Shown here piece by piece: positions 11,219-52,540 of a DNA stretch of 64,000 nt (position 1 is its first letter; every line of letters starts with the position of its first letter). Position numbers and translations under genes: made by a program. This stretch comes from Neoconidiobolus thromboides FSU 785 (lineage: Eukaryota; Fungi; Entomophthoromycota): assembly GCA_025603075.1 (NCBI GenBank), contig MU626374.1:2371-66370 (forward strand), read 5' to 3'. The notes under the pieces were generated by a model. That model worked only from the letters and a program-made list of their open reading frames with translations. It was not told the origin of the DNA and did no database searches.

Positions 11219-12673
11219 TTACATTAAAATTTCATTGTGGAAATTTTCCTTTAACTCCTTATTGGGTAATACAAGACAATTACGTATAATTAACTCATCT
11301 TTGACTTTAACTTCTTTACCAAGAATAGTCGTTGATTGGATTTTAATTCCATTCTTAGTAATGGTAGAATGCCCATCACTGAAACTTCCTTGGATACGTA
11401 CCCATCTTCCAATAGACGATCCCCATCCAATAATAGAATGTACGATGCAAGCGTCAGACTATAATAAAATGCAATAAATAAAAATGGCTTATAATGAAAA
11501 ATGTGTTTACTTTGACTTGGACATTATCTAATATAATTGATTCTCTGATACGTACACCATCCTCGAGTACAACATTTGGTCCAATAGAAACATTTGGTCC
11601 AAGCTGAATAAAGCTGTTAAATACAAATATAATAATAAACAATATTTAATTACTTTGACATTAGCACCGATAGTGGCACTTGGGTGAATGGAAACATTAC
11701 CAACAATTTCTGCTTTTTCTCCATTTTTAGCAATTAAACTTGAGTTTGCTTTGGCCATTTCTTCAAGGTATAAAGCATTTGATGGGATGGCAGAACTAAA
11801 TAGATTAATATATAATAAACCAATAGGATTTAAAATTACCTTGCAGTACTAAGTTGACGCCATGGTGTATTAATAGAATATACATAAATCTTCTTAGAAC
11901 CAGCTAACGGTTGAAGTAAATCTTGTTCTAAACGTAAAACATCACTAGCTACATGTGTATCACTACTCAAGTTATATTAAACTATAAATATATTAATTTT
12001 AATATTATTTACCGAGTATCTACTTTCTCTTTAGCTAATTTGATTTCATCAAAGACTGAAGTATCAAAAAGATAAACACCACATGAAATCAAATCAGAAA
12101 TAAAGGTTTCTGGCTTTTCAACATAGTGTAAAACTTCATTGGTATTAGAATCCGCTACTAAACAACCGTAATTTTTGGCTTCTTCACGCGATACCTAATA
12201 ATTGTTTAGTAATATCCTTTATTATTTTTGATCTCAATTACTTTAGTGCCGACAATGGTACAAAGTCTATCAGAGGTATTATGGTCCTCAATGATGCTTT
12301 CAAATGGTAAAGATGCACAAACATCAGCATGGATAACAAAGATCTGTTTAGGGTTTCCACGACGGAATTCATCTCTGAAGTGATAAATACCACCAGCAGT
12401 ACCCATAGCTTGATATTCACGAAGGTACTTAACATTTAAATTTGGGAAATCAGCTTTGACTTTGTTTAAAAACGGAGCAAATACAGAGTCTTCAAAGAAA
12501 CCAATTAAATATACTTCGTTAAGCTCTTTGACTTTGCTTAATTGAACTAAATGATGATAAATTACTGGCTCTCCACCAATTGGAAATAAGGGCTTTGGTA
12601 AATCTAAACTTAATGGTCTAAATCTAGTTCCTCGACTTGGTCCTCCTACTAAAATTGCTGCTTTGACACTCAT
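11219..12673 (-). CDS. GMPPA: Mannose-1-phosphate guanyltransferase alpha (GMPPA/Psa2-like), multi-exon
   Basis: KAAILVGGPSRGTRFRPLSLDLPKPLFP, EYQAMGTAGGIYHFRD, hexapeptide repeats IHPSATIGANV/LGPNVSIGPNV, C-terminus VLPNKELKENFHNEILM*. Confidence 0.93.
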
Positions 12674-14835
12674 TGTTGTTTTTATAAAGATAAAATAAGA
12701 TTTAAATTGGATATTTTTAATTACATTGCATTTACAATTCCTATTTTAATTGCCCGTATAAACCAATCACATCATACCATATTTTGTCATTAGCCACGCC
12801 TCTGTTTTATTGGTTAACTATTTAAATCTATTTTAAAAAATGAGCTAAAAATGAGTTGAAGTGATTAAAATTGATTTTTTTTTAGAATTCTGATTTTTGT
12901 TGAAATTGTTCAAAAATAAAGTAACCTCAACCTCATTTATTTTTTTGTTGGATACTGCTGAGAATTGAACTTTAATTATTAAAATCGAAATACAAAACCT
13001 TTAAAACATATTTAAATAGCCTTATGTTTTTAAATTTTGATGCTAAATTCATATGTCTATATTACTAAGCATACTTAAATTCAATGGTACTAAAAGTTTA
13101 TGCTTAATTTATACTCATACAACTAGTAATATGATAGAGCCTAGAGTGTTAATATTGACACAAAATAACTAAGCGTGGGAATATATGAAATGTTTATTGA
13201 AATTGGCAGTTTTACTATAGAAAAAAACAAAAATTAGTGTCTAAAAACTCAAATCATCCAGATTCTCAATTTAAGTCAGTAAAGAAAGTTTTTTTGCTCA
13301 TTAATACCCAGTTAGACGTAAATAATATAGGAAATAAAGTTATATATAGAAATAGTAGTTTCTTAAAGAAAGCGTATGTTTATACTATATGACCTTGTCT
13401 ATTTATTCTTTTGAGCTTTACAGTAAGACATACGATTATCGGATGTAGCCTATTTCAGCTGAAGTCACAGTTGTTACCCCACAGCTAAAAATAAACCAAA
13501 AGATGCTGATATTATAAAGTCTTTAATAAATTTATGATATCACTCTTAGTGACTTTGTATATTATTTTAATATATATCGACCTGGGGTATTTATTATTTA
13601 ATTTGATAAAAATTATGTAAGGTTATTTTTATAATACAGTCAATCATTTTAATTATTGCAGAAAAAGTAAAATTGGTCTTGTTTTATTTTGCAAACTTCA
13701 TTTGGTCTATCATGCAATACTATTTAATTACAACTCGAACCAATGAAATCCCTCTTGCAGTTTTAAACTAAATTCAGTATTATTATTTTAATTTTTTACT
13801 TTTAGGTTTTTATTTAAATAAATTATTGATTTTAGTAATTATTTTTCAATATATTATGAATTTTAGAGGTTATTATTATTAACCTGAAGGTTTCTTTTTT
13901 TGAAATAAGAATAAAGCTTATAAAAATGTTTAATTTTTCTTAGAAAAACTTAAGTGATACCCTCTTATCCTCAACTTTCATAAAGATGGGTATCGCCATT
14001 ATAGATTTTCTGAAGAGTCTCTTTTAAATAACTGCAATGTAATCAAATAAAATACTGCAGCAGAAACAAATCTATAGTGCATGATTTTTGTAAAAATGGA
14101 AGTAATTAACACAATTAACTGTAAAGCTTTTTCTGATTAATACTAATATGATACAAATTATAATAACTACCATTTTTTAAAACAATTTAAAAGAATTATA
14201 TAATATTAAAAAAATTATAATTAAAGAGGAGATTCACTGTAAAAATAAGCATTCTGAAGTAACTATAGTAAAACAAAAATAAAGTTATTTAAGCACTTTT
14301 AACACAATGCTATTAAACTTTCAATGTTTTATAAAAACAAGTTATAACTATCCCCTTTTCAAATCCAGCTAATATACATAACTTATAGATGTTATACTTT
14401 ATCTCAAACTAGTTAAACTTGGACTCAAGCCAATATCCCAGCTAATAGTGTTTAACAATTTTAATTTTGTATGGGTTTTGTACCAAGCTTTAGTGATTTT
14501 AATTAATTTTTAACCCTCTCAATTTTGTTACGACATCAAACTCTAAGCAAACGAAAAGTGATTGGATACTAATATTAAAAAGGGTAAAAGTAGATAAAAA
14601 GATGAATTAACTTGGGGGCCTAAAAATTTATTAAAAGATGGAGATTAGGATAAATAGATAAGTTTAATAAGGTAAAAAACCATAGGTATGCTTCTATTTA
14701 AGAATAAGTTAATAGATAGATACATTAGTACCCAGGAAGCATGAGAGTAAAAGCTATATAAAGAGTACAACACTGATATGTACTAAAATTAAGAGTTCGG
14801 TTTGATATCAGCTTTAAAAGACATATTTAATACTT

Positions 14836-15789
14836 ATGAATTTCCATATTACTTCTATCTTACTATTCGCCTTGACTGGTGTAAGCCAAGCCTATTCCCC
14901 GTGGGAAAGCTTTTTTCCACAAAGTGGAATGAATAACAATATGGATTTTGGTTCTATGTTTAATCAATTTGGTAATGATAAAAATGGTGGCGATGCTCAA
15001 AGCGGTAGTAATTATTTCCCACAGCAAAATAACCAAAATTCTCAAAATAACAATATGAATTTCTGGCCCATTCAAGGAGGTAATAATAATAATTATCGTC
15101 CTCAACAGCAACAAAATAACAACTATCGTCCTCAACAGCAACAAAATAACAACTATCGTCCTCAACAGCAACAAAACAATAATATGTTTCGTCCTCAACA
15201 ACAACAGCAACAGCAGCAGGGTGATGATGACATGAGTGGTAATTATCGTCCTCAGCAACAACAGCAACAACAGCAACAACAGCAACAGCAACAAGGTAAT
15301 GATAACATGAGTAATAATTATCCTCCTCAGCAACAACAACAGCCACAACAACAACAACAGTCACAGCAACAAAGTAACGGTCAATGTAGCAAGCTTGGTG
15401 ACATGCCAAACAAGTACCCATTCACTGTAGAAATGAACAAGAACGCCCCCGGTATACCAAAAGGCCAATGTACTGAATGGGCTGATGGTAGATATTATCA
15501 ATTAACTGGTCAACACGCTATATTCAATGGAGATGCCCATCGTTGGAATGAATTAGCTCAAGGTAAGGCTGGTTGGACAGTTTCTAATACACCATCGGTA
15601 CCTTCAATCGTAGTTATTGAACAATACCAAGCTGGTTCTGGTGTATATGGCCATGTAGCTGTGGTTGAATCTATGAGTGGAGACACTTTCTGTACATCGA
15701 ATTGGAATTCGCCAACCTTAGGTGGATTAACCTTTAAATCTATGAAAACTGGGCCTGGTATCTCCTTCATTAAATATACTGGAAATTAA
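14836..15789 (+). CDS. Secreted CHAP-domain (Cys/His amidohydrolase-peptidase) protein with Gln/Asn-rich repeat region (CHAP-1)
   Basis: Signal peptide MNFHITSILLFALTGVSQA; low-complexity Q/N region; C-terminal GQCTEWA..RY..LTG..GDA..W...G.TVS.TPSVPSIVV...YGHVAVVES..SNWN with catalytic Cys and His; intronless. Confidence 0.9.
   Translation: MNFHITSILLFALTGVSQAYSPWESFFPQSGMNNNMDFGSMFNQFGNDKNGGDAQSGSNYFPQQNNQNSQNNNMNFWPIQGGNNNNYRPQQQQNNNYRPQQQQNNNYRPQQQQNNNMFRPQQQQQQQQGDDDMSGNYRPQQQQQQQQQQQQQQGNDNMSNNYPPQQQQQPQQQQQSQQQSNGQCSKLGDMPNKYPFTVEMNKNAPGIPKGQCTEWADGRYYQLTGQHAIFNGDAHRWNELAQGKAGWTVSNTPSVPSIVVIEQYQAGSGVYGHVAVVESMSGDTFCTSNWNSPTLGGLTFKSMKTGPGISFIKYTGN
15088..15360 (+). repeat. Coding tandem repeats: 30-bp unit (NNNYRPQQQQ) about 3.5 times, then two polyQ-G(D/N)D.MS.NY.PQ units
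   Basis: aataacaactatcgtcctcaacagcaacaa repeated exactly; caa/cag runs. Confidence 0.9.
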
Positions 15790-15891: not shown

Positions 15892-18177
15892 TTATAATTT
15901 TATAGCTCTATAAAAAGAGGCATACATGTTCACTCTGTCTAAGGCAATATTGGACCCTTGCTCACGGATACCCATTGGAGAAACTGAAAAGTTAAATTCT
16001 TCAAAGAGTTTGTTATACCATGGGAATCTAGCAGAGGATCTCCAGAATACATAACCTCCCTTTTTAACTTGAACTGACAATTGTTGGATTTCTTCACGAG
16101 CATCCTTTTCATTAAACCAATCCATGTGGTCCATAAGGATCACTTTAGTTAAAGAACTTGGTTCTAAAGATCTTAATACCTCTAAAATGGAAGAAGTATG
16201 TAATCTCATGGTATCTAATATATTAGTAGACTTTAAACGTTGGAAGTATTTTTGATTGACATAAGATGGGCATGAATCTTGAGTGTATTGTAACTTGAGG
16301 CACAAATGATAGAAATATTGATCGTTTGAGAATAATGAACGGGAAATAATAGGGTCTAAGGTATCGCACATGTATTGGTAAGAAGAACCTTCATTTAACA
16401 ACATGTTCCATTGATTGATAGGTACACCTAATGCTTTCCATAAGAACACTGGGTTGTCTAGCAATTTAATAAACCAAGAATTCAAGATGATGGGACGAAT
16501 AGATTGATTATAAATGCGCTTTTGCTCTTCGATTGTTTTAGCCGAACATAAAGCATCTACTTGTTTCTTAATACCTAAACATTTAATTAAAAATTGGACA
16601 ATGTTAAGAGCATAGCCAGAGCATCCAGTTTTAAAAAAATTATTTTTAGTAAAGCGATCAGTATTTAGTTTCCAGTATTGATAAGCTGGTGAAGACATAT
16701 GAGCAGATAACTTTAAATCCAATAAATTTTCAAAGTTTTCATTAGTACCTTCACCAAACATTTTCCAGAATTCATTATAGCCAAGGGCTTTAATACCAGC
16801 AATCTTAAGCTCCAATAAATGATTTTGGTGAGGATTCATATCAATACAGTGGATTCGTTTAATATCGGCGTGACAAAGGTAATCCAAAGCATTGTCTCCG
16901 GCACTAGTAATAACAAACATTTCATCTTCTGGGTTAAGATCTAACACCTTAATATCTTCTCTTGGGTCTTCCCAAGTAAAGGCGTAAATGTAGGTATCAA
17001 ATTGAGTGTGACATGGTCTAGTAGGATTATATGGCATACGATTTTTAGTGAAAGATAAAGCAGAAGATTGCTTGCTTTCAGTTTCAATTAATTGAGCTGG
17101 CTTAGAAGCTTCAACTTTAGTACTGTTATCAGCGGATTCTAAAACGGGAATGGGTGTTACACTAGAATCTGAGTAAAAATTAGAGGATTTTGGGGAACCT
17201 AACCAAATATAGTATGGGATTTGGACAAGATAAGGAACAATGAAATGGTTACGTCCAGAGAAGGATTTGATGGTACTAAATTTATATTCCAAATAATCAC
17301 GGCGGCATGGATGTAAGTTAATATGATCAAAATCAAACCAGATTTGCCAGAACCAGCGAGTAAACCAATTACATTGACGATTGACTAAACCACCATCATT
17401 TGCAGTAGTTGGTAACACTCTACCAGAGGTATAAAAATCACACACACCAATAAAACCATTGGGAGATAGTAATTGATTTACATTATCAATCACAGGGTAG
17501 AAAGAATCAATCATCGAAAGGCTATAAGACATAGTAATCAAATCAATCTTTTGTTTAGGGTTATTAAGTTGAGGTAAGATAAAGTTGGAAGCATCAGCAC
17601 AGACAACATGTACGTTATCCCATCCATTACGCTTAAATCTTTCACTTGCTACCTTACATAAAGAGGGGGTTAAATCTACTAAATATACCTTATCAAAATT
17701 TTTGATTGGGAAAAAAGAGTTCATTTTTTCAATATTCCAGCCGGTACCACCACCTAAATCAATCCAAACTAAACCTTCTTGTTTCATTTCACTTAATTTT
17801 GAAGCACATAATTTCAACATAGTTGTACGACCTCTCAATAATTGACTACGGGTATCATCATAGATGGTAGCTTGGTCTTTATAGAAAGATTCCAACCTTG
17901 ATTGTTGGTCGCTATTTTTACCTAAAGGTTTAATGAAACAGGAGTAAATGAATTTGAACTGGGATTGAAATTTAGTGTAAGCTAAAAAGATGGTTAATGA
18001 TAGAGCAACCAAGAATAAGCCTAAAGCGCCATAGCTCTTGTCCATCACTTTATTACTAAGGAATTCTCCTAATAGACTAGGATTAAAGGATAAATAGATC
18101 ATTCCACCAGCTACAGCGACTAACAGTATGTTGTAGATGGTAGAGTTGTTTTTTTTTTCTTCTTTTAATGAAGACAT
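15892..18177 (-). CDS. BTA1: Betaine lipid (DGTS) synthase, BtaB methyltransferase + BtaA (DUF3419) fusion
   Basis: 761 aa, intronless; RLESFYKDQATIYDDTRSQLLRGR, WIDLGGGTGWNIE, YIYAFTWEDPREDIKVL, ITSAGDNAL, ILMDHMDWF, DRVNMYASF. Confidence 0.95.
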   Translation of the reverse strand: MSSLKEEKKNNSTIYNILLVAVAGGMIYLSFNPSLLGEFLSNKVMDKSYGALGLFLVALSLTIFLAYTKFQSQFKFIYSCFIKPLGKNSDQQSRLESFYKDQATIYDDTRSQLLRGRTTMLKLCASKLSEMKQEGLVWIDLGGGTGWNIEKMNSFFPIKNFDKVYLVDLTPSLCKVASERFKRNGWDNVHVVCADASNFILPQLNNPKQKIDLITMSYSLSMIDSFYPVIDNVNQLLSPNGFIGVCDFYTSGRVLPTTANDGGLVNRQCNWFTRWFWQIWFDFDHINLHPCRRDYLEYKFSTIKSFSGRNHFIVPYLVQIPYYIWLGSPKSSNFYSDSSVTPIPVLESADNSTKVEASKPAQLIETESKQSSALSFTKNRMPYNPTRPCHTQFDTYIYAFTWEDPREDIKVLDLNPEDEMFVITSAGDNALDYLCHADIKRIHCIDMNPHQNHLLELKIAGIKALGYNEFWKMFGEGTNENFENLLDLKLSAHMSSPAYQYWKLNTDRFTKNNFFKTGCSGYALNIVQFLIKCLGIKKQVDALCSAKTIEEQKRIYNQSIRPIILNSWFIKLLDNPVFLWKALGVPINQWNMLLNEGSSYQYMCDTLDPIISRSLFSNDQYFYHLCLKLQYTQDSCPSYVNQKYFQRLKSTNILDTMRLHTSSILEVLRSLEPSSLTKVILMDHMDWFNEKDAREEIQQLSVQVKKGGYVFWRSSARFPWYNKLFEEFNFSVSPMGIREQGSNIALDRVNMYASFYRAIKL

Positions 18178-20923: not shown

Positions 20924-21937
20924 ATGTTATTTTATTATATTTATTTCTTATTTTACTTTAATTCTTATTATTGTTCATACTATTATAATCCTAACTTCTA
21001 TTCCAATAGCTATAACTTAATCGCTTATAACAATAACGATAATAGTAATGTAAATAATCAAAACAGTGTAAATGATAGCAATGATAATAATAGTGATAAT
21101 GGCAACATAAACAATAACAGTAATAGCAATGAGAGCAACAGTACTAATATAAATAATAATATAAATACCAATAATATTCCTATAAATAATAACAACAATT
21201 TAAATGAAAAGAAAGTGAAATTAACGTATTATTGGATAGCCATGGAAAAGGATTACCCTTTAAAACCGAACGAAGAAGGAATTAATATTAAAAGTTGTAA
21301 AGATAATAAACAAATAATTAAAAAAGTAAGTAGTCAATACTTTAAGAAGATTCAAATGGAAGGTAGTGGTCTATTGTCAAATAATCAATTTATTAATTGT
21401 GGTGATAAGTATTGTAATTGTTTTGATTTTACAGAGGGTGCTAAAGGCAATAAAAACAATCTATTGATGCCTTATACATCGATTGCAGCCAATGACTTGA
21501 CTTTCAACATAAACATATTTAGTAAAGAAATCAATGGTACATTATTACCAAATAATCAAGTACATAATGGTTGTTTTAGAGTGGATGATACAAGTTGGTC
21601 TTTTAATAATAATCATATTGATTGGTTTGTTTATGATATCAATAACTATAACTATTTGGACAAAAAATTAAACTATAATGAAGTAACTATACAACTAAAC
21701 AGCAACTGTAACATCTTGAGCTATAATAGTACATCAAATAATAGCAGTAGTAATGTCACAACTACCAACGGTACTACAAATAACAGTAATACAAAATATA
21801 ATTATAATTTAAACAATATAACTAATACTATTCCTATTAGTTATATTAATCCTAAGTATAAACCTAATTTTAAACCTATTTCTACTTCTTTAATATCTAA
21901 GTTTAATAATTTTTTTACAAATTATTTTTATAATTAA
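20924..21937 (+). CDS. Secreted 3D (Asp-Asp-Asp)/MltA-like double-psi beta-barrel protein
   Basis: Hydrophobic N-terminus from ATG 20924, Asn-rich linker, then KLTYYWIAME..C..MEGSG..NC..CNCF..LMPYTSIAAND..HNGCFRVDDTSWSF..HIDWFV with three conserved Asp; Asn/Ser/Thr tail. Confidence 0.78.
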   Translation: MLFYYIYFLFYFNSYYCSYYYNPNFYSNSYNLIAYNNNDNSNVNNQNSVNDSNDNNSDNGNINNNSNSNESNSTNINNNINTNNIPINNNNNLNEKKVKLTYYWIAMEKDYPLKPNEEGINIKSCKDNKQIIKKVSSQYFKKIQMEGSGLLSNNQFINCGDKYCNCFDFTEGAKGNKNNLLMPYTSIAANDLTFNINIFSKEINGTLLPNNQVHNGCFRVDDTSWSFNNNHIDWFVYDINNYNYLDKKLNYNEVTIQLNSNCNILSYNSTSNNSSSNVTTTNGTTNNSNTKYNYNLNNITNTIPISYINPKYKPNFKPISTSLISKFNNFFTNYFYN

Positions 21938-45214: not shown

Positions 45215-47019
45215 AAATCTTGAATTTAGACAAATAAAATGCAAATATAGATTTTTAATTGTAAACTGTTTAAAAAGGCAAGAAGCGTATTTTGATGTAA
45301 CCAATATAAAAAAACCGAAACAGTACTAAATTTAATGACTATTGTAAAATTACGGATTTTTTGAACTTACATAGATCTGGTATAATAGTAAAAATAAAAC
45401 TTATAGATGAGTGGATATTACAAATAAACATTGGCTAGGTTTACCTAGAGATTGAGATTTTTATATTTATTAATTCATATTACTTTTAAATATCACTTTT
45501 ATAACTTGAAATATCGGATTTATCTTCTCCCAACCTTCATTCAAGAAGTTTATATTCAAGTTTTATTATTATTGCAATTTAATACCTGGATTAATGATTA
45601 ATAGTTCCGTTACTATTTTCAAGTCGACCACTCTATAATAAGGAATTTCACTATAGCAAAGATAAATTATTGAAAACGGGTACTGAAGGGTCATGAAATC
45701 AAATTGTGCGATATTAATTCGAAAATTGTTATAAGCTTATTGATATGTTTAGTGACATTCTTCTTTATTTGTTAATTTCATTGAATAAAATTAGAAATTA
45801 ACTTTAGATAAACAATTTAGTCTCTAATTATTTGACACATAAAACATGCTATAATAGTTATAAATATAACATAAAAAGGAGGCTGGATATATTTTTCTGA
45901 AACTGAAAGTATAAAAGTATATTAAAATGCAAAACCACATGATTTAAGTGAGTCGTCTAATTAATAATTGAGATTCCCTATGATATTAGTATCCAACTAA
46001 GCCTAGAACTTAGTTAAATAAGTACTATATTTTTATTTTTATAGATTTAGATTAATTTCGTACTTTAATATTTGTGATAACAATTATTCTGAGAATGAGG
46101 TAATTTTAGTAGGACATTGTTAATTTTTTAGAGGGCTTAATACAAAACTTTAGTGATTTGTTAGCCAAAGTAAAAGCTGTTTAAACAAAAACAGTAATAA
46201 TGTTAATATAGCTTAGAAGATTAAAATAAACCACTATAGTCTATATAGTTTAAGAACTGTTTTATTTCTAAGTTGTGTTTTATTATAAGAATTCCACCTA
46301 TAGCTTACATCAGGACTTTTCTACTTAGCAATAACAGAAAATCTACTGTTTTTAGCCTCGCCGCTATCTTAATTTTATTTCTACATTAGTATATTACTAA
46401 AATAATGACTGGTATTCCTTTTTTACACTATACTATCCGTCTTATAATAAAATAAAGATTTAAAGGAACAATAGGATTTATTATAAGAAAATAATAAAGA
46501 GTGATGAATTTAAACTGGGATGCTTTATACCAATATAGTAAAATGTATTTTTGAGAATTGATTTCTACTTATAGAGGTAATTATCATTGTATAGAAAAAA
46601 GATTGAGTATCCTATTAATCATATCCTTTCTAGCATATAGTTTTTATTTTAGACAAAATATTTAACATTTCAATACATTACTTTATAATAAGAAGACTAA
46701 TGGTGCGAATATTAATAAAAACATATTGGCGTTATCTAAATTGTATTACTGTGTATATTAAATAATATAAAAAAGCTAAATAAATATTACTTATTTTTAA
46801 ATTTGTTATTGTAAAAATAAACCATGCAATTTAAAAAATCTGGTTTAAAATTAGTGAGTTGGATAAAAGTTATTTTGGATTTTCGGAATTCAGTGAATTG
46901 AAAAATTCTTGGATTTTTTCTTTAAGAATAAATTCGCTAATTCTTAGAAATACAGGACTATATATACTTTCAATAAGAAACAACTTATCGTGTTATATTA
47001 TCAAAAATAATTCAAATTG

Positions 47020-47775
47020 ATGAGTACTTCAACTAAGCTAAAGTCTAAGAAAAACTGTGTTCAAGCTTGTGATGGATGTAAAGTGAAAAAGAGAAAATGC
47101 GTAAAGGGACAGGATGCAATATGTGAAAACTGCAAAAGGCTAGGCAGCGTATGCACTTATTTAATAAAAAACAATAAACGGGGAAATTCAGAAAATTATA
47201 AAAAGAAGTCAGCTTCTACCCCAATAATAGAAGGATCTATGGCAAACTATCCAATGAGCTCTGGCGACCGCTTTTCTGCCAATACAAGCCCTGGAACTCA
47301 ATTTACTTATGCTTCTACTTCTTATACAAATGTACCATCATCTTATCGCAATCGAAGCCCATTATGTTTGGAGGTAAATTCACTGGATTCAAACCTATCG
47401 AACGGTACTTTCTTTGACTATGATATGGAGTTAAATGAGTATGTAATTAAAGGATGTGAGCTAGAAGATTTATTCAACTTAAGCGAAAATTTCCATAAAA
47501 TACCAAATATCAATTTGATTTCAGTGATATCTGAGCAGCAAATTAGAGATCTAAGGTTTATACCTTTAACTAATTCGATCTTGTTATTATTGTACTCTTT
47601 AGCTTCAATCACACAGTATTACAGTGATCCTTTAGATATGAAGAAAGTTTCAATTTTGTATAATAAGGGTCTTAAGCTATTGCCAGATTGCTCCAATATT
47701 CCTGAAATTGAAACGCCAGTAGTAAACACAGCTGTCTTCATTTTAAATTGCTTATACTGTAACCTAAATATGTAA
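47020..47775 (+). CDS. Zn(II)2Cys6 binuclear cluster transcription factor
   Basis: ACDGCKVKKRKCVKGQDAICENCKRLGSVCTY; a further 3-prime exon cannot be excluded. Confidence 0.88.
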   Translation: MSTSTKLKSKKNCVQACDGCKVKKRKCVKGQDAICENCKRLGSVCTYLIKNNKRGNSENYKKKSASTPIIEGSMANYPMSSGDRFSANTSPGTQFTYASTSYTNVPSSYRNRSPLCLEVNSLDSNLSNGTFFDYDMELNEYVIKGCELEDLFNLSENFHKIPNINLISVISEQQIRDLRFIPLTNSILLLLYSLASITQYYSDPLDMKKVSILYNKGLKLLPDCSNIPEIETPVVNTAVFILNCLYCNLNM

Positions 47776-49909: not shown

Positions 49910-50841
49910 TTGCACATTTAGTAGCTAGCAATTTAACGGGGTTTGTTTTCATTTTTATGTATTTTTGAAAATAAAATATTTTAAACTACCAAAATCAGTA
50001 ATCTAATGTGACAAAATGCTTTAAAGAAATATTTTGAAATCCACTCTTGTTTCAGTATCTTTTGCATATTCCAAACAGCCTAAGATATAAAAAATATTGG
50101 GTTTTCTCGTATATCCTACCACGAAAAACAAAAGATTGCGTAGAATCTATTCTTGAAGGTACCAATACTACAACAATAAGGTCATTTTTTGCAATGTTGT
50201 CACTGTTTCCCAAAAAAAATCCCAATCGAAAAAGTTACTAATAAGATTGATTTTATACTACAAAAAATTGGGATTAGCTAAAAACTATCTCCTTATCAAA
50301 AAGCTTAGAAGTTTGAATTACAGTTTTAGCCAAAACTACTACTTTTTTAGAGTTAGATTTTTGCAGCAAATATATGGGAAAATCTAATATAGACAAATTC
50401 TTAAAACATGAGTATTTGGAATTTAGATTATTAAGAAATTGAAATACTCATTTATTTAATATCGACAATGTTGTAAAAGATATATAAAGAAATAAACACT
50501 CAACATTAAATTAAAATACCCAACTTTATTATCAACTAAAAAGTATTGATTAGATCCTTTAATAAAATTAATACTTTAGCAGTAAAGAGTAGTTAGAAAT
50601 CATTTGTTTAAAAAACGAGGTAAAAAAGATGTAATTTTTTAACCAACTTTAAAAAAATACAAGTATGAAGTCTAATAAAATTGTAATTCTACTTTAAATA
50701 GATTAGGTAAAACTCTATGATGAAATAAAATAACGTTTCTGTTTTGCCTCATGGGCAACTAATGTAATTGATTGATTATGATATGTAAATATATATATAG
50801 TCTGGAAAATAAAACAATACTAAAATCAAATTCACTATTTA

Positions 50842-51459
50842 ATGCTTTTCAATTTTATCATCATCTTATTCTTATATAATCATCTATCAATATTATGCCT
50901 CAATATTCAAGGTCCACTGTTAAATAGTCAAAAAGGTAAAGTACATAGTAAATTAAAGTTAAAGCATAATACTAATTAAAGCATAGATATATTATCTTCT
51001 AATGCACCAAATAGCTATAGTTTTGATTCAACAAATGATAGCTATGATAGTGATCTTGAATGTGAACTAGCACACTTACCTACTAAGTATCCATTTTCCA
51101 TTGAAATGAACAAATACGCTTCACATATACCAAAAGGTCAATGTACCGAATGGGCGGATGGTAGATACTATCAACTTACCGGCAACCATGCTTTGTTTAA
51201 TGGTGATGCCTATAAGTGGAATGAATTGGCAAGCAATAATCAAGATTGGAAAGTGAGCAAAATTCCTAAGGTACCATCCATAATGGTAACTGAAAAATAT
51301 ACGAACGGAGCAGGGGAATTCGGCCATGTCTCTATAGTGGAATCTATTATTGATCAAAATACAGTGTGTACCTCAAACTGGAATTTTCCTCAAAGAGGCA
51401 AACTTACGCTTAAAAAAGTTAGGATTATTCCTTCTACTTCGTTCATTTATCATAGATAG
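50842..51459 (+). CDS. Secreted CHAP-domain protein, paralog 2 (CHAP-2), 2 exons, 188 aa
   Basis: Signal peptide MLFNFIIILFLYNHLSILC from ATG 50842; phase-1 intron 50936-50986 (gtaaag..ctaat..catag) restores the frame; KYPFSIEMNK..IPKGQCTEWADGRYYQLTG..FGHVSIVES..CTSNWN. Confidence 0.88.
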
Positions 51460-51952
51460 ATTGTGTTTTATATTAGTTGAATGTTTATTTTTAATTAAAG
51501 TTGTTTTAGATAACAAAATGTTAAATCTTGATTTTAATTTAATTGTATTAAAAAATGAATATTTCGGTTAGTATTATTAATAAGTATTAGTCTATTCTTA
51601 GTTTAAATCTATTACTACTGAATTTATAAAAGGGTTGGTCTAAAATCTCCCTCCCTATATAATCTTAATTATTTCTGCTTTAATAGCCTACTCTGGTTAT
51701 ATTATTAACTCGGTTAAATAATTATCCTTACTAAAATCAAACAGATCATAATTGAACAAATAAAAAAATTGCCACAAAATATATCATCCCCATAGAGTCA
51801 TACCTCTCTTTGATACTCGAATAAAACTTTACGCAGCCTTTAACTGCGTATAACATTGCTTGATTTAGATCAAAATATTAATGGTTTACATAGCTTTAAT
51901 AGGAATAGATATCAAGTATGCACTTCATGTAGAAGTGATCAAACTAATAGAA

Positions 51953-52540
51953 TTAGTTTTCTTTTGTTTCAGTAGAAGGCTTAGTAAAGAATGAGTCTAA
52001 CTCTTGATCAAGCTCTTCTTTGGTTTTTTTAGGACGAGATTCATTGTTACGGCGACCTTTGGTGCGGCGTTGGTTACCACCCCTTCTATTACCGTTACCT
52101 CTCTTATCATTGAATTCACGAGTTGGCCCAACACGAGATGAAATTGGAGCCTTTGCATCTGATGGGGTGTATGGGAGAGCCAATTTCATTGAACGGCCAT
52201 CAAGAGTGACACCATGGTATTTTTTAACAGCAGTGACGGCGTCAATAGAGCGAACAAATATAACCTCACCGGTACCTTGAGACTTTCCATTGGAGTCAAA
52301 GTTGATGTTGGCAGAACGAATACGACCAATTTGACCAAATAATTCTTTGATATCTTCTACGGTTACATTGTAATGAAGATTAGATATCAAAATCTTGTGG
52401 ACATCTTTAAGATCGTTAAGCTCCTTATTTTGTGGAGCTCTACCCCTTCTGTCATTGCCATTCTTGCGTCTAGCGCCACCATTAAAGGTTTTTGAGCTCT
52501 TAATAACATCATCTAATGAAAGATCTAATTGAGACGTCAT
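51953..52540 (-). CDS. YRA1: mRNA export adaptor Yra1/ALYREF (RRM with N and C boxes)
   Basis: LDLSLDDVIK N-box; RRM ILISNLHYNVT..IKELF...GTGEVIF; KKTKEELDQELDSFF C-box. Confidence 0.92.
   Translation of the reverse strand: MTSQLDLSLDDVIKSSKTFNGGARRKNGNDRRGRAPQNKELNDLKDVHKILISNLHYNVTVEDIKELFGQIGRIRSANINFDSNGKSQGTGEVIFVRSIDAVTAVKKYHGVTLDGRSMKLALPYTPSDAKAPISSRVGPTREFNDKRGNGNRRGGNQRRTKGRRNNESRPKKTKEELDQELDSFFTKPSTETKEN

Follow-up and report, generated by a model that had tools for sequence, protein, structure and literature searches.

Two predicted secreted CHAP hydrolase genes of probable bacterial origin in the fungus Neoconidiobolus thromboides

Introduction

Fungi make no peptidoglycan, which raises the question of why one of them should carry genes that resemble bacterial cell-wall hydrolases, and from where it obtained them. 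The genes in question lie in a 64,000-nucleotide stretch of DNA from Neoconidiobolus thromboides FSU 785 (NCBI GenBank assembly GCA_025603075.1, contig MU626374.1, positions 2,371 to 66,370 of the forward strand), here called the window. Gene 1 occupies positions 14836-15789 of the window and gene 2 positions 50842-51459, both on the + strand. By every sequence and fold criterion applied, the two are members of the CHAP family (PF05257 / MEROPS C51). We consider it probable that these paralogous nuclear genes encode secreted CHAP hydrolases that are of bacterial origin and act on bacterial peptidoglycan.

Results

Gene 1 is an uninterrupted ATG-to-stop open reading frame (ORF) of 317 amino acids, in which the following features were placed.

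14836..14892, + strand: predicted signal peptide, residues 1-19 (MNFHITSILLFALTGVSQA), from hydropathy, with Ser at -3 and Ala at -1
14893..15384, + strand: Q/N-rich low-complexity linker, residues 20-183, from translation and composition
15385..15786, + strand: CHAP module, residues 184-317, from Pfam, the family hidden Markov model (envelope 201-317), an AlphaFold (AF2) model and Foldseek
15385-15387, + strand: clade-specific Cys184
15469-15471, + strand: catalytic Cys212 in GQC
15652-15654, + strand: catalytic His273 in GHV
15691-15693, + strand: clade-specific Cys286
15700-15702, + strand: putative third triad residue Asn289 (TSNWN), from alignment
15787-15789, + strand: stop codon

The N-terminus, MNFHITSILLFALTGVSQA followed by YS, resembles a signal peptide, with a hydrophobic core whose best 10-residue Kyte-Doolittle mean is 2.28. 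The linker that follows is 164 residues long, 54% of them Gln or Asn, and its tandem repeats at 15085-15377 consist of NNNYRPQQQQ units and polyQ (Tandem Repeats Finder arrays with periods of 30 and 75). Pfam assigns residues 206-289 to CHAP PF05257 (E 3.6e-13, 50.2 bits; gathering score 26), and gene 2 receives an equal score (E 3.6e-13, 50.2 bits), so that HMMER puts both genes above the gathering score. The original prediction, made from the sequence without database searches, had claimed for gene 1 a signal peptide and a complete CHAP fold with GQC and GHV motifs; ORF, hydropathy, Pfam and the AF2 model agree with it. The second CHAP copy that it placed at 50842-51459 is likewise real by Pfam, though split by an intron into two exons. 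The CHAP domains of the two genes are 60% identical.

A profile built from 97 relatives matches solved CHAP wall hydrolases, led by S. aureus 5t1q (E 1.4e-22) and including S. saprophyticus 2k3a, SsaA-like 2lrj, the phage phi812 hub CHAP and pneumococcal PcsB. The AF2 model of gene 1 residues 185-317 (predicted local distance difference test 86.6, predicted template-modelling (TM) score 0.83) finds 5t1q as its best PDB match in Foldseek, with a TM score of 0.72 and a root-mean-square deviation of 2.1 Å over 111 residues. The 22 PDB matches with E <=1e-3 all belong either to CHAP-type wall hydrolases or to staphylococcal proteins with a CHAP domain; glutathionylspermidine amidases appear among the weaker matches, at ranks 25-47. 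Across the 97 family members the His is invariant and the Cys at least 90% conserved, both aligning with the same residues in 5t1q and 2k3a. In the gene 1 model, helix H27-40 begins at the catalytic Cys, and the His lies on strand E89-97. The HMMER alignment sets Asn289 of TSNWN against the catalytic Glu of staphylococcal SESN, and the Asn state is common to the entire subfamily formed by the fungal and Ktedonobacteria proteins. The Cys-His pair is kept, with Asn as the predicted third triad residue; the sequence gives the enzyme class and not the bond cleaved. In one Entomophthorales-clade homologue, from a Logan assembly (P0050, 593 amino acids), Ser replaces the catalytic Cys (GQSIEW) and the N-terminal region is very long and Pro-rich; this paralogue may be inactive or serve for binding only.

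The relatives of the two genes have a narrow distribution. A word-index search with the gene 1 domain returned 36 proteins, from Entomophthora muscae (n = 7), Massospora cicadina (n = 1) and Basidiobolus meristosporus (n = 3), followed by bacterial and metagenome matches that comprised Ktedonobacteraceae and Ktedonosporobacter rubrisoli CHAP proteins and unnamed metagenome proteins ("surface antigen"). A HMMER scan of 1.84 billion representative proteins gave 583 matches at <=1e-3, 166 of them at <=1e-10. The named proteins among the best 150 of these matches come exclusively from Entomophthorales, Basidiobolus or Ktedonobacteria, and no further fungal phylum or eukaryote is represented. In the two fungal clades all named members belong to Entomophthoromycotina. 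Mucoromycota, Kickxellomycotina, Glomeromycota and Dikarya are well represented among the proteomes of the searched collections. Looking up 20 unnamed eukaryote-like representatives added Conidiobolus coronatus (KXN70074), further E. muscae proteins, a second Massospora protein, eight proteins of Basidiobolus ranarum and two more of B. meristosporus. E. muscae has at least 15 distinct family proteins, several neighbouring on one contig, and Basidiobolus species have 5 to 8 or more. A 9-kb metagenome contig (JGI 3300042649; L073:1730-5466) carries two tandem Entomophthorales-clade CHAP genes, with the Cys pair described below, beside an F-box/leucine-rich-repeat gene; this neighbour marks the contig as eukaryotic, and it probably derives from an unsequenced relative of these fungi.

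Outside the fungi, the closest relatives are CHAP proteins of Ktedonobacteria, at 41-50% identity over the domain. We scanned one prokaryote genome per species (185,579 species, GTDB) for the motif [YKN]GQCT[YED][WF]A[DN], a search that shows where the subfamily lives and not where CHAP domains occur at large. The 65 confirmed loci were, save one, labelled Ktedonobacteria, Chloroflexia or Chloroflexota, and their labels included Dictyobacter, Ktedonobacter, Ktedonosporobacter, Tengunoibacter, Thermogemmatispora, metagenome-assembled genomes (MAGs) of Ktedonobacteraceae or Ktedonobacterales, "uncultured Chloroflexia" and Chloroflexota. Two to five CHAP ORFs lie within ~6 kb at 24 of the 65 (L001 and L008 among them). 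The likeness to CHAP proteins of Ktedonobacteria or Chloroflexi that the original prediction had noted is thereby confirmed. The single locus with another label (L065, CAWGIP010000024.1) comes from a MAG named "uncultured proteobacterium"; since the tree sets its CHAP among Ktedonobacteraceae sequences, the MAG was probably misbinned or mislabelled. A phage or plasmid donor was considered and rejected: tblastn searches of 50,697 phage and 72,556 plasmid records recovered distant CHAPs alone (33-44% identity). Nearly all of these were staphylococcal, and Lactococcus, Macrococcus, Bifidobacterium and Calothrix supplied the few others.

Phylogenetic analysis joins the fungal proteins to these bacteria. 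With FastTree, 278 domains fell into three blocks, namely Entomophthorales, Basidiobolus and a bacterial block of 239 rows (95). The root was set by seven outgroup CHAPs recovered by tblastn from plasmids and phages (S. saprophyticus, S. epidermidis, S. aureus, Lactococcus garvieae, Bifidobacterium breve and two Staphylococcus phage tail lysins). Using IQ-TREE under LG+C20+F+G4 with posterior mean site frequencies (110 rows, 119 columns), fungi and Ktedonobacteria formed a clade with 99/98 support, apart from Firmicute, Actinobacterial and phage CHAPs. Basidiobolus was recovered at 99/95 and Entomophthorales, including the metagenome pair, at 94/81; the window CHAPs grouped with Massospora, Entomophthora and Conidiobolus. 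The bacterial and phage outgroups, together with the breadth and copy number of the family in Ktedonobacteria, point to transfer from bacterium to fungus. Acquisition from bacteria, as originally proposed, is in keeping with this clade and with a eukaryotic spread limited, among the best 150 matches, to Entomophthorales and Basidiobolus, and a bacterial origin with Ktedonobacterial affinity is supported by these sequence comparisons. The original prediction had further expected the fungal sequences to nest in bacteria and not to form a deep eukaryotic clade. The maximum-likelihood (ML) tree contains no deep, broadly eukaryotic clade, which upholds the second part of that expectation; for the first, positions within and beside the sampled Ktedonobacteria do not separate over 119 columns.

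Some of the same data tell against this account of the origin. Beyond the clades named above, the IQ-TREE backbone is a polytomy over 119 columns. When the bacterial rows were constrained to a single group the log-likelihood fell by 11.3, and the approximately unbiased (AU) test did not reject this Ktedonobacteria monophyly (p 0.37), so that we do not claim that the fungi nest inside Ktedonobacteria. Basidiobolus sequences share a mean identity of 48.5% with bacteria and 40.9% with Entomophthorales, a pattern that fits two transfers too. Finally, the motif used for the prokaryote scan was drawn from the subfamily itself, and the taxonomic restriction of its matches is to that extent by construction.

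An alternative is that Basidiobolus and Entomophthorales each received the gene separately from a Ktedonobacteria-like donor. Two such transfers would account for a free ML tree that leaves the fungal clades unjoined, for the greater nearness of Basidiobolus to the bacterial rows, and for the restriction of the Cys pair and a shorter post-TSNWN loop to Entomophthorales. However, constraining the 37 fungal rows together raised the log-likelihood by 9.9 over the free search (AU p 0.65). The two fungal clades also have two derived states in common, which supports a single origin: Glu or Asp follows GQCT in 22/22 and 14/14 fungal rows as against 5/223 bacterial rows (Trp in the outgroups), and His occupies position 27 of the gene 1 domain in both clades, where bacteria have Trp or Tyr. 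Within-clade identity is 46% for Entomophthorales and 64% for Basidiobolus, and faster evolution of the former can also explain the identity pattern. We regard two transfers as somewhat unlikely and one fungal origin, which is compatible with the data, as slightly favoured.

Far less probable is an old, vertically inherited eukaryotic or fungal family that was lost elsewhere, a transfer from fungus to Ktedonobacteria, or contamination of the assembly; we consider this group of explanations very improbable. Since Ktedonobacteria monophyly is not rejected, the tree alone leaves the direction between sister groups unfixed. The outgroups and the whole CHAP superfamily are nevertheless bacterial or phage, and several Ktedonobacteria families hold many paralogues, often in tandem and with up to 5 per 6-kb locus. 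Vertical descent was rejected on this distribution, in which no further fungal phylum appears among the best matches although the databases are rich in such proteomes.

Bacterial contamination was rejected on three grounds, namely fungal neighbours on both sides, the intron of gene 2 and host-like composition. GC content at third codon positions (GC3) is 0.28-0.30 in the CHAP genes and 0.30-0.31 in native genes, against a mean of 0.57 in the Ktedonobacterial homologues. The neighbours bear out the claim of the original prediction that the genes are embedded among fungal genes. A GDP-mannose pyrophosphorylase gene at 11300-12673 (- strand) is interrupted by at least five introns, each 45-60 nt long, with GTAA(T/A) donors, AT-rich bodies and YAG ends. 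Tail to tail with gene 1 lies a betaine-lipid synthase gene (BTA1; 15892-18177, - strand), intronless and with methyltransferase and DUF3419 parts; the best 120 listed matches of its product with a source name are all fungal, from Glomeromycota, Mucoromycota, Mortierellomycota, Kickxellomycotina and Basidiomycota, and the gene marks its host as one of the early-diverging fungi. A Zn2Cys6 factor (47017-47775) and an RRM/FoP protein (51953-52540) are further fungal neighbours.

Gene 1 is transcribed. Its RNA contigs from three runs extend from 14800 to ~15750, whereas depth over 14500-14753 is zero in all runs, and one contig begins at 14800 straight after adapter sequence; this start, with the zero depth upstream, marks a transcript and not contaminating DNA. 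Substitutions were counted between the window genes and RNA contigs of a related strain. Gene 1 differs by 5 synonymous and 3 other changes (Q>H in the repeat, A>S and I>L) and gene 2 by 6 synonymous and 2 conservative ones (I>V and K>R), a pattern that, on these counts, is that of genes under purifying selection.

Comparison of the fungal and bacterial proteins suggests how the family was remodelled. In the bacterial proteins the domain is preceded by a Pro/Gln-rich N-terminal tail and one transmembrane segment, and a hydrophobic segment lies upstream in 96/109. A second Ktedonobacteria architecture was also seen, in which the domain is N-terminal and a transmembrane segment lies downstream (26/32 such proteins). 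Among the fungal gene models, 13/23 in one clade and 11/15 in the other begin with a signal-peptide-like sequence, and the remainder are mostly visibly partial. The fungal linkers, all of low complexity, are unrelated to one another: gene 1 has Q/N repeats, E. muscae proteins have Pro-rich repeats and Basidiobolus linkers are rich in Ser, Asn and Gly. In all 23 Entomophthorales-clade rows one Cys immediately precedes TSNWN and another lies 22-27 residues before GQC, corresponding to Cys184/Cys286 in gene 1 and Cys57/Cys159 in gene 2. The pair is absent from every Basidiobolus row, as is a Cys before TSNWN from all ~173 bacterial rows. This Cys pair would most simply be a lineage-specific disulfide.

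Gene 2 is not one ORF. We model it as two exons separated by a 51-nt intron, with a product of 188 amino acids.

50842..50935, + strand: exon 1, with a signal-peptide-like start (MLFNFIIILFLYNHLSILCLNIQG...; Kyte-Doolittle mean 2.98)
50936..50986, + strand: predicted intron, 51 nt, GTAAAG...ATAG, phase 1, with the frame exactly restored across it
50987..51459, + strand: exon 2, a short acidic linker and the CHAP module, from Pfam
51061-51063, + strand: Cys57
51142-51144, + strand: catalytic Cys84
51325-51327, + strand: catalytic His145
51367-51369, + strand: Cys159
51376-51378, + strand: putative third triad residue Asn162 (TSNWN), from alignment
51457-51459, + strand: stop codon

The intron resembles, in size and donor type, the five introns of the GDP-mannose pyrophosphorylase gene at 11.3-12.7 kb, which serve as a helpful local benchmark for calling introns in this genome. 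RNA contigs cover gene 2 from ~50716 to 51521, at lower depth than gene 1, and they conflict with the spliced model. No splice joint at 50936-50986 was reported in four RNA runs; the contigs of X4, X5 and X7 are continuous through the intron, and X10 lacks gene 2 coverage. Were the intron never removed, only a 117-residue product without signal peptide would be possible. Gene 2 could on this evidence be a decaying or non-secreted copy that keeps its intron, leaves the signal-peptide exon unjoined and yields a cytosolic fragment of at most 117 amino acids, as might also be read from a depth upstream of ~51056 that is about one third of that downstream in two runs.

Several observations argue for splicing. 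The only in-frame ATG in exon 2 is at 51106, and the stretch from the intron to this codon is conserved with gene 1 at the protein level and contains the clade-specific Cys57; translation must then begin upstream, which requires splicing. Besides the likeness of the intron to local ones, exon 2 has accumulated 6 synonymous against 2 conservative changes. Contigs, moreover, lose minor isoforms and may stem from pre-mRNA. We consider a decaying or non-secreted gene 2 quite unlikely and retain the spliced model as a prediction despite its conflict with the intron-containing contigs. As a separate observation, the contigs of two runs break at 51056-51085, with depth ~3x higher downstream (31 to 94 in one and 17 to 50 in the other). 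This segment has no AG, hence no canonical splice acceptor, and an allelic variant or an internal start could explain the break.

Two observations on the neighbouring genes are recorded here. The betaine-lipid synthase gene is represented by one 2.3-kb RNA contig, with high depth in run X4. An ORF at 20924-21937 (+ strand), 5 kb from gene 1, matched no Pfam family at E 1e-3; in an Atlas feature search its nearest clusters were "3d domain protein" clusters of Zoopagomycota and Mucoromycota and a bacterial PF06725 cluster, at a sub-threshold score of only 0.89, which makes it a lead and not a finding.

Discussion

Together, these results suggest the following history. The gene for a membrane-anchored wall CHAP of a Ktedonobacteria-like soil bacterium (Chloroflexota) would have entered the fungal lineage long ago, most likely once and before the split between Basidiobolus and Entomophthorales. 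A signal peptide followed by a variable low-complexity linker would then have taken the place of the bacterial N-terminal tail and transmembrane anchor, codon usage would have shifted to that of the host, and gene 2 would have gained its intron. In Entomophthorales the Cys pair would have arisen as well, probably as a disulfide that links the N-terminal extension with the strand bearing the putative catalytic Asn, and the family would later have expanded in E. muscae and Basidiobolus.

The mature enzyme is expected to leave the hypha, where its Cys212-His273-Asn289 triad would cut an amide bond of peptidoglycan, whether in the stem peptide, in the cross-bridge or at MurNAc-L-Ala. Bacteria that rival the fungus for soil litter, gut contents or insect cadavers could in this way be lysed or weakened, and nutrients set free. 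The signal peptides, intact catalytic residues, purifying selection and transcription make an antibacterial or bacterivorous use plausible. In a fungus with no peptidoglycan of its own, a predicted secreted family of peptidoglycan-type hydrolases that is conserved, expressed and expanded points to enzymatic antagonism toward bacteria or to feeding on them. Entomophthorales and Basidiobolus inhabit insect bodies, guts and litter.

Three considerations weigh against peptidoglycan as the substrate of a secreted enzyme. The Pfam scan found no SH3b, LysM or other cell-wall-binding module, and many exolytic CHAP lysins carry one. The substrate is assigned through relatives of ~34% identity, and the signal peptides of both genes and of their homologues were judged from hydropathy alone. 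A family acquired from bacteria might have been repurposed to another amide or peptide substrate (fungal wall proteins, insect cuticle or haemolymph proteins, or a small gamma-glutamyl amide) or to trimming peptidoglycan fragments so as to blunt insect immune sensing. CHAP domains also include glutathionylspermidine/trypanothione amidases, the weaker fold matches noted above, and the largest expansion is in E. muscae, an obligate insect pathogen. The third triad residue is Asn here and Glu in the staphylococcal enzymes, yet Asn is also found in the Ktedonobacteria proteins, which by their architecture are membrane-anchored extracytoplasmic wall enzymes. The nearest solved relatives, moreover, are all peptidoglycan hydrolases, and the family is also retained, in expanded form, in Basidiobolus and the genus Conidiobolus, neither of which is known as an obligate insect pathogen. 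We consider such repurposing unlikely and favour bacterial peptidoglycan as the substrate.

A bolder form of this reading, which we offer tentatively as possible but short of likely, is that a single very old transfer of a Ktedonobacteria wall-remodelling CHAP gene, received by the shared ancestor of Basidiobolus and Entomophthorales, founded a fungus-specific secreted bacteriolytic family, stabilised by a disulfide, with fast-evolving linkers, that expanded in tandem in insect destroyers and serves to defend gut or cadaver against bacteria until sporulation.

Our analysis bears on several wider matters. Ktedonobacteria stand out as a clear donor group, and the comparison affords a stepwise view of how an anchored bacterial enzyme may become a eukaryotic secreted one, through anchor swap, intron gain, codon amelioration and a new Cys pair. 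The family would also be a rare genomic character bearing on the common ancestry of Basidiobolus and Entomophthorales and, under the bolder reading, a useful marker for the disputed monophyly of Entomophthoromycotina. In addition, the proteins are small candidate lysins that are, by prediction, already fitted to eukaryotic secretion.

Relation to Known Systems

Prior description of this fungal CHAP family was not found in the searchable literature, nor was any work pairing CHAP with Zoopagomycota, Entomophthora, Conidiobolus or Basidiobolus. Database names for the family are automatic only, for example "Peptidase C51 domain-containing protein". A survey of transfers into 44 early-diverging fungi mentions neither CHAP nor peptidoglycan in its text and in the part of its supplement consulted (PMC11291939); for a different secreted family, found in chytrids, that part of the supplement does list Ktedonobacter racemifer as donor (PMC11291939). 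The CHAP family is also unmentioned in a study of transfers in Basidiobolus (PMC7466969) and in the E. muscae genome paper (PMC11105155).

The nearest known proteins are the uncharacterised CHAP proteins of Ktedonobacteria (Ktedonosporobacter rubrisoli, Dictyobacter and Thermogemmatispora), which belong to the same subfamily and share with the fungal ones, beyond the identity and clade support given above, the signatures GQCT.WA..RY.(Q)LTG, TP.VPSI.V, GHVA.VE and TSNWN. They differ in having a tail and anchor in place of a predicted cleavable signal peptide, in lacking the Entomophthorales Cys pair, in their higher GC3, and in the Tyr or Trp after GQCT where the fungal genes have Glu or Asp. 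More distant are the staphylococcal CHAP hydrolases and phage tail lysins (5t1q, 2k3a, 2lrj, 9eum; SsaA-like), which, at ~34% identity, have the same fold with Cys and His in the same places; unlike the proteins described here, they use a catalytic Glu (SESN) where Asn (TSNWN) stands and are fused to other wall-targeting or glucosaminidase modules.

Acquisition of bacterial wall hydrolases by eukaryotes has precedents. The oomycete Saprolegnia parasitica has an expanded family of secreted CHAP proteins that has been attributed to horizontal transfer from bacteria (PMC3681718). It likewise combines a eukaryote, a secreted CHAP and a transfer, in a different host kingdom; no oomycete is among the named eukaryotes of the 150 closest relatives, and the Saprolegnia acquisition was therefore probably separate. 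Tick Dae2 derives from a bacterial peptidoglycan amidase gene domesticated by a eukaryote (bioRxiv 10.1101/2020.04.10.036376). The dae genes of ticks and other eukaryotes follow the same concept, a bacterial amidase that gained a secretion signal and is used against bacteria, but they come from type VI secretion Tae effectors, a non-CHAP family, and their antibacterial role has been shown experimentally, whereas here we infer it. If the bolder reading given above is correct, the genes described here would be a fungal counterpart of tick dae. The kind of event, in which a eukaryote acquires a bacterial wall hydrolase, is thus known, and this fungal family is a new case of it.

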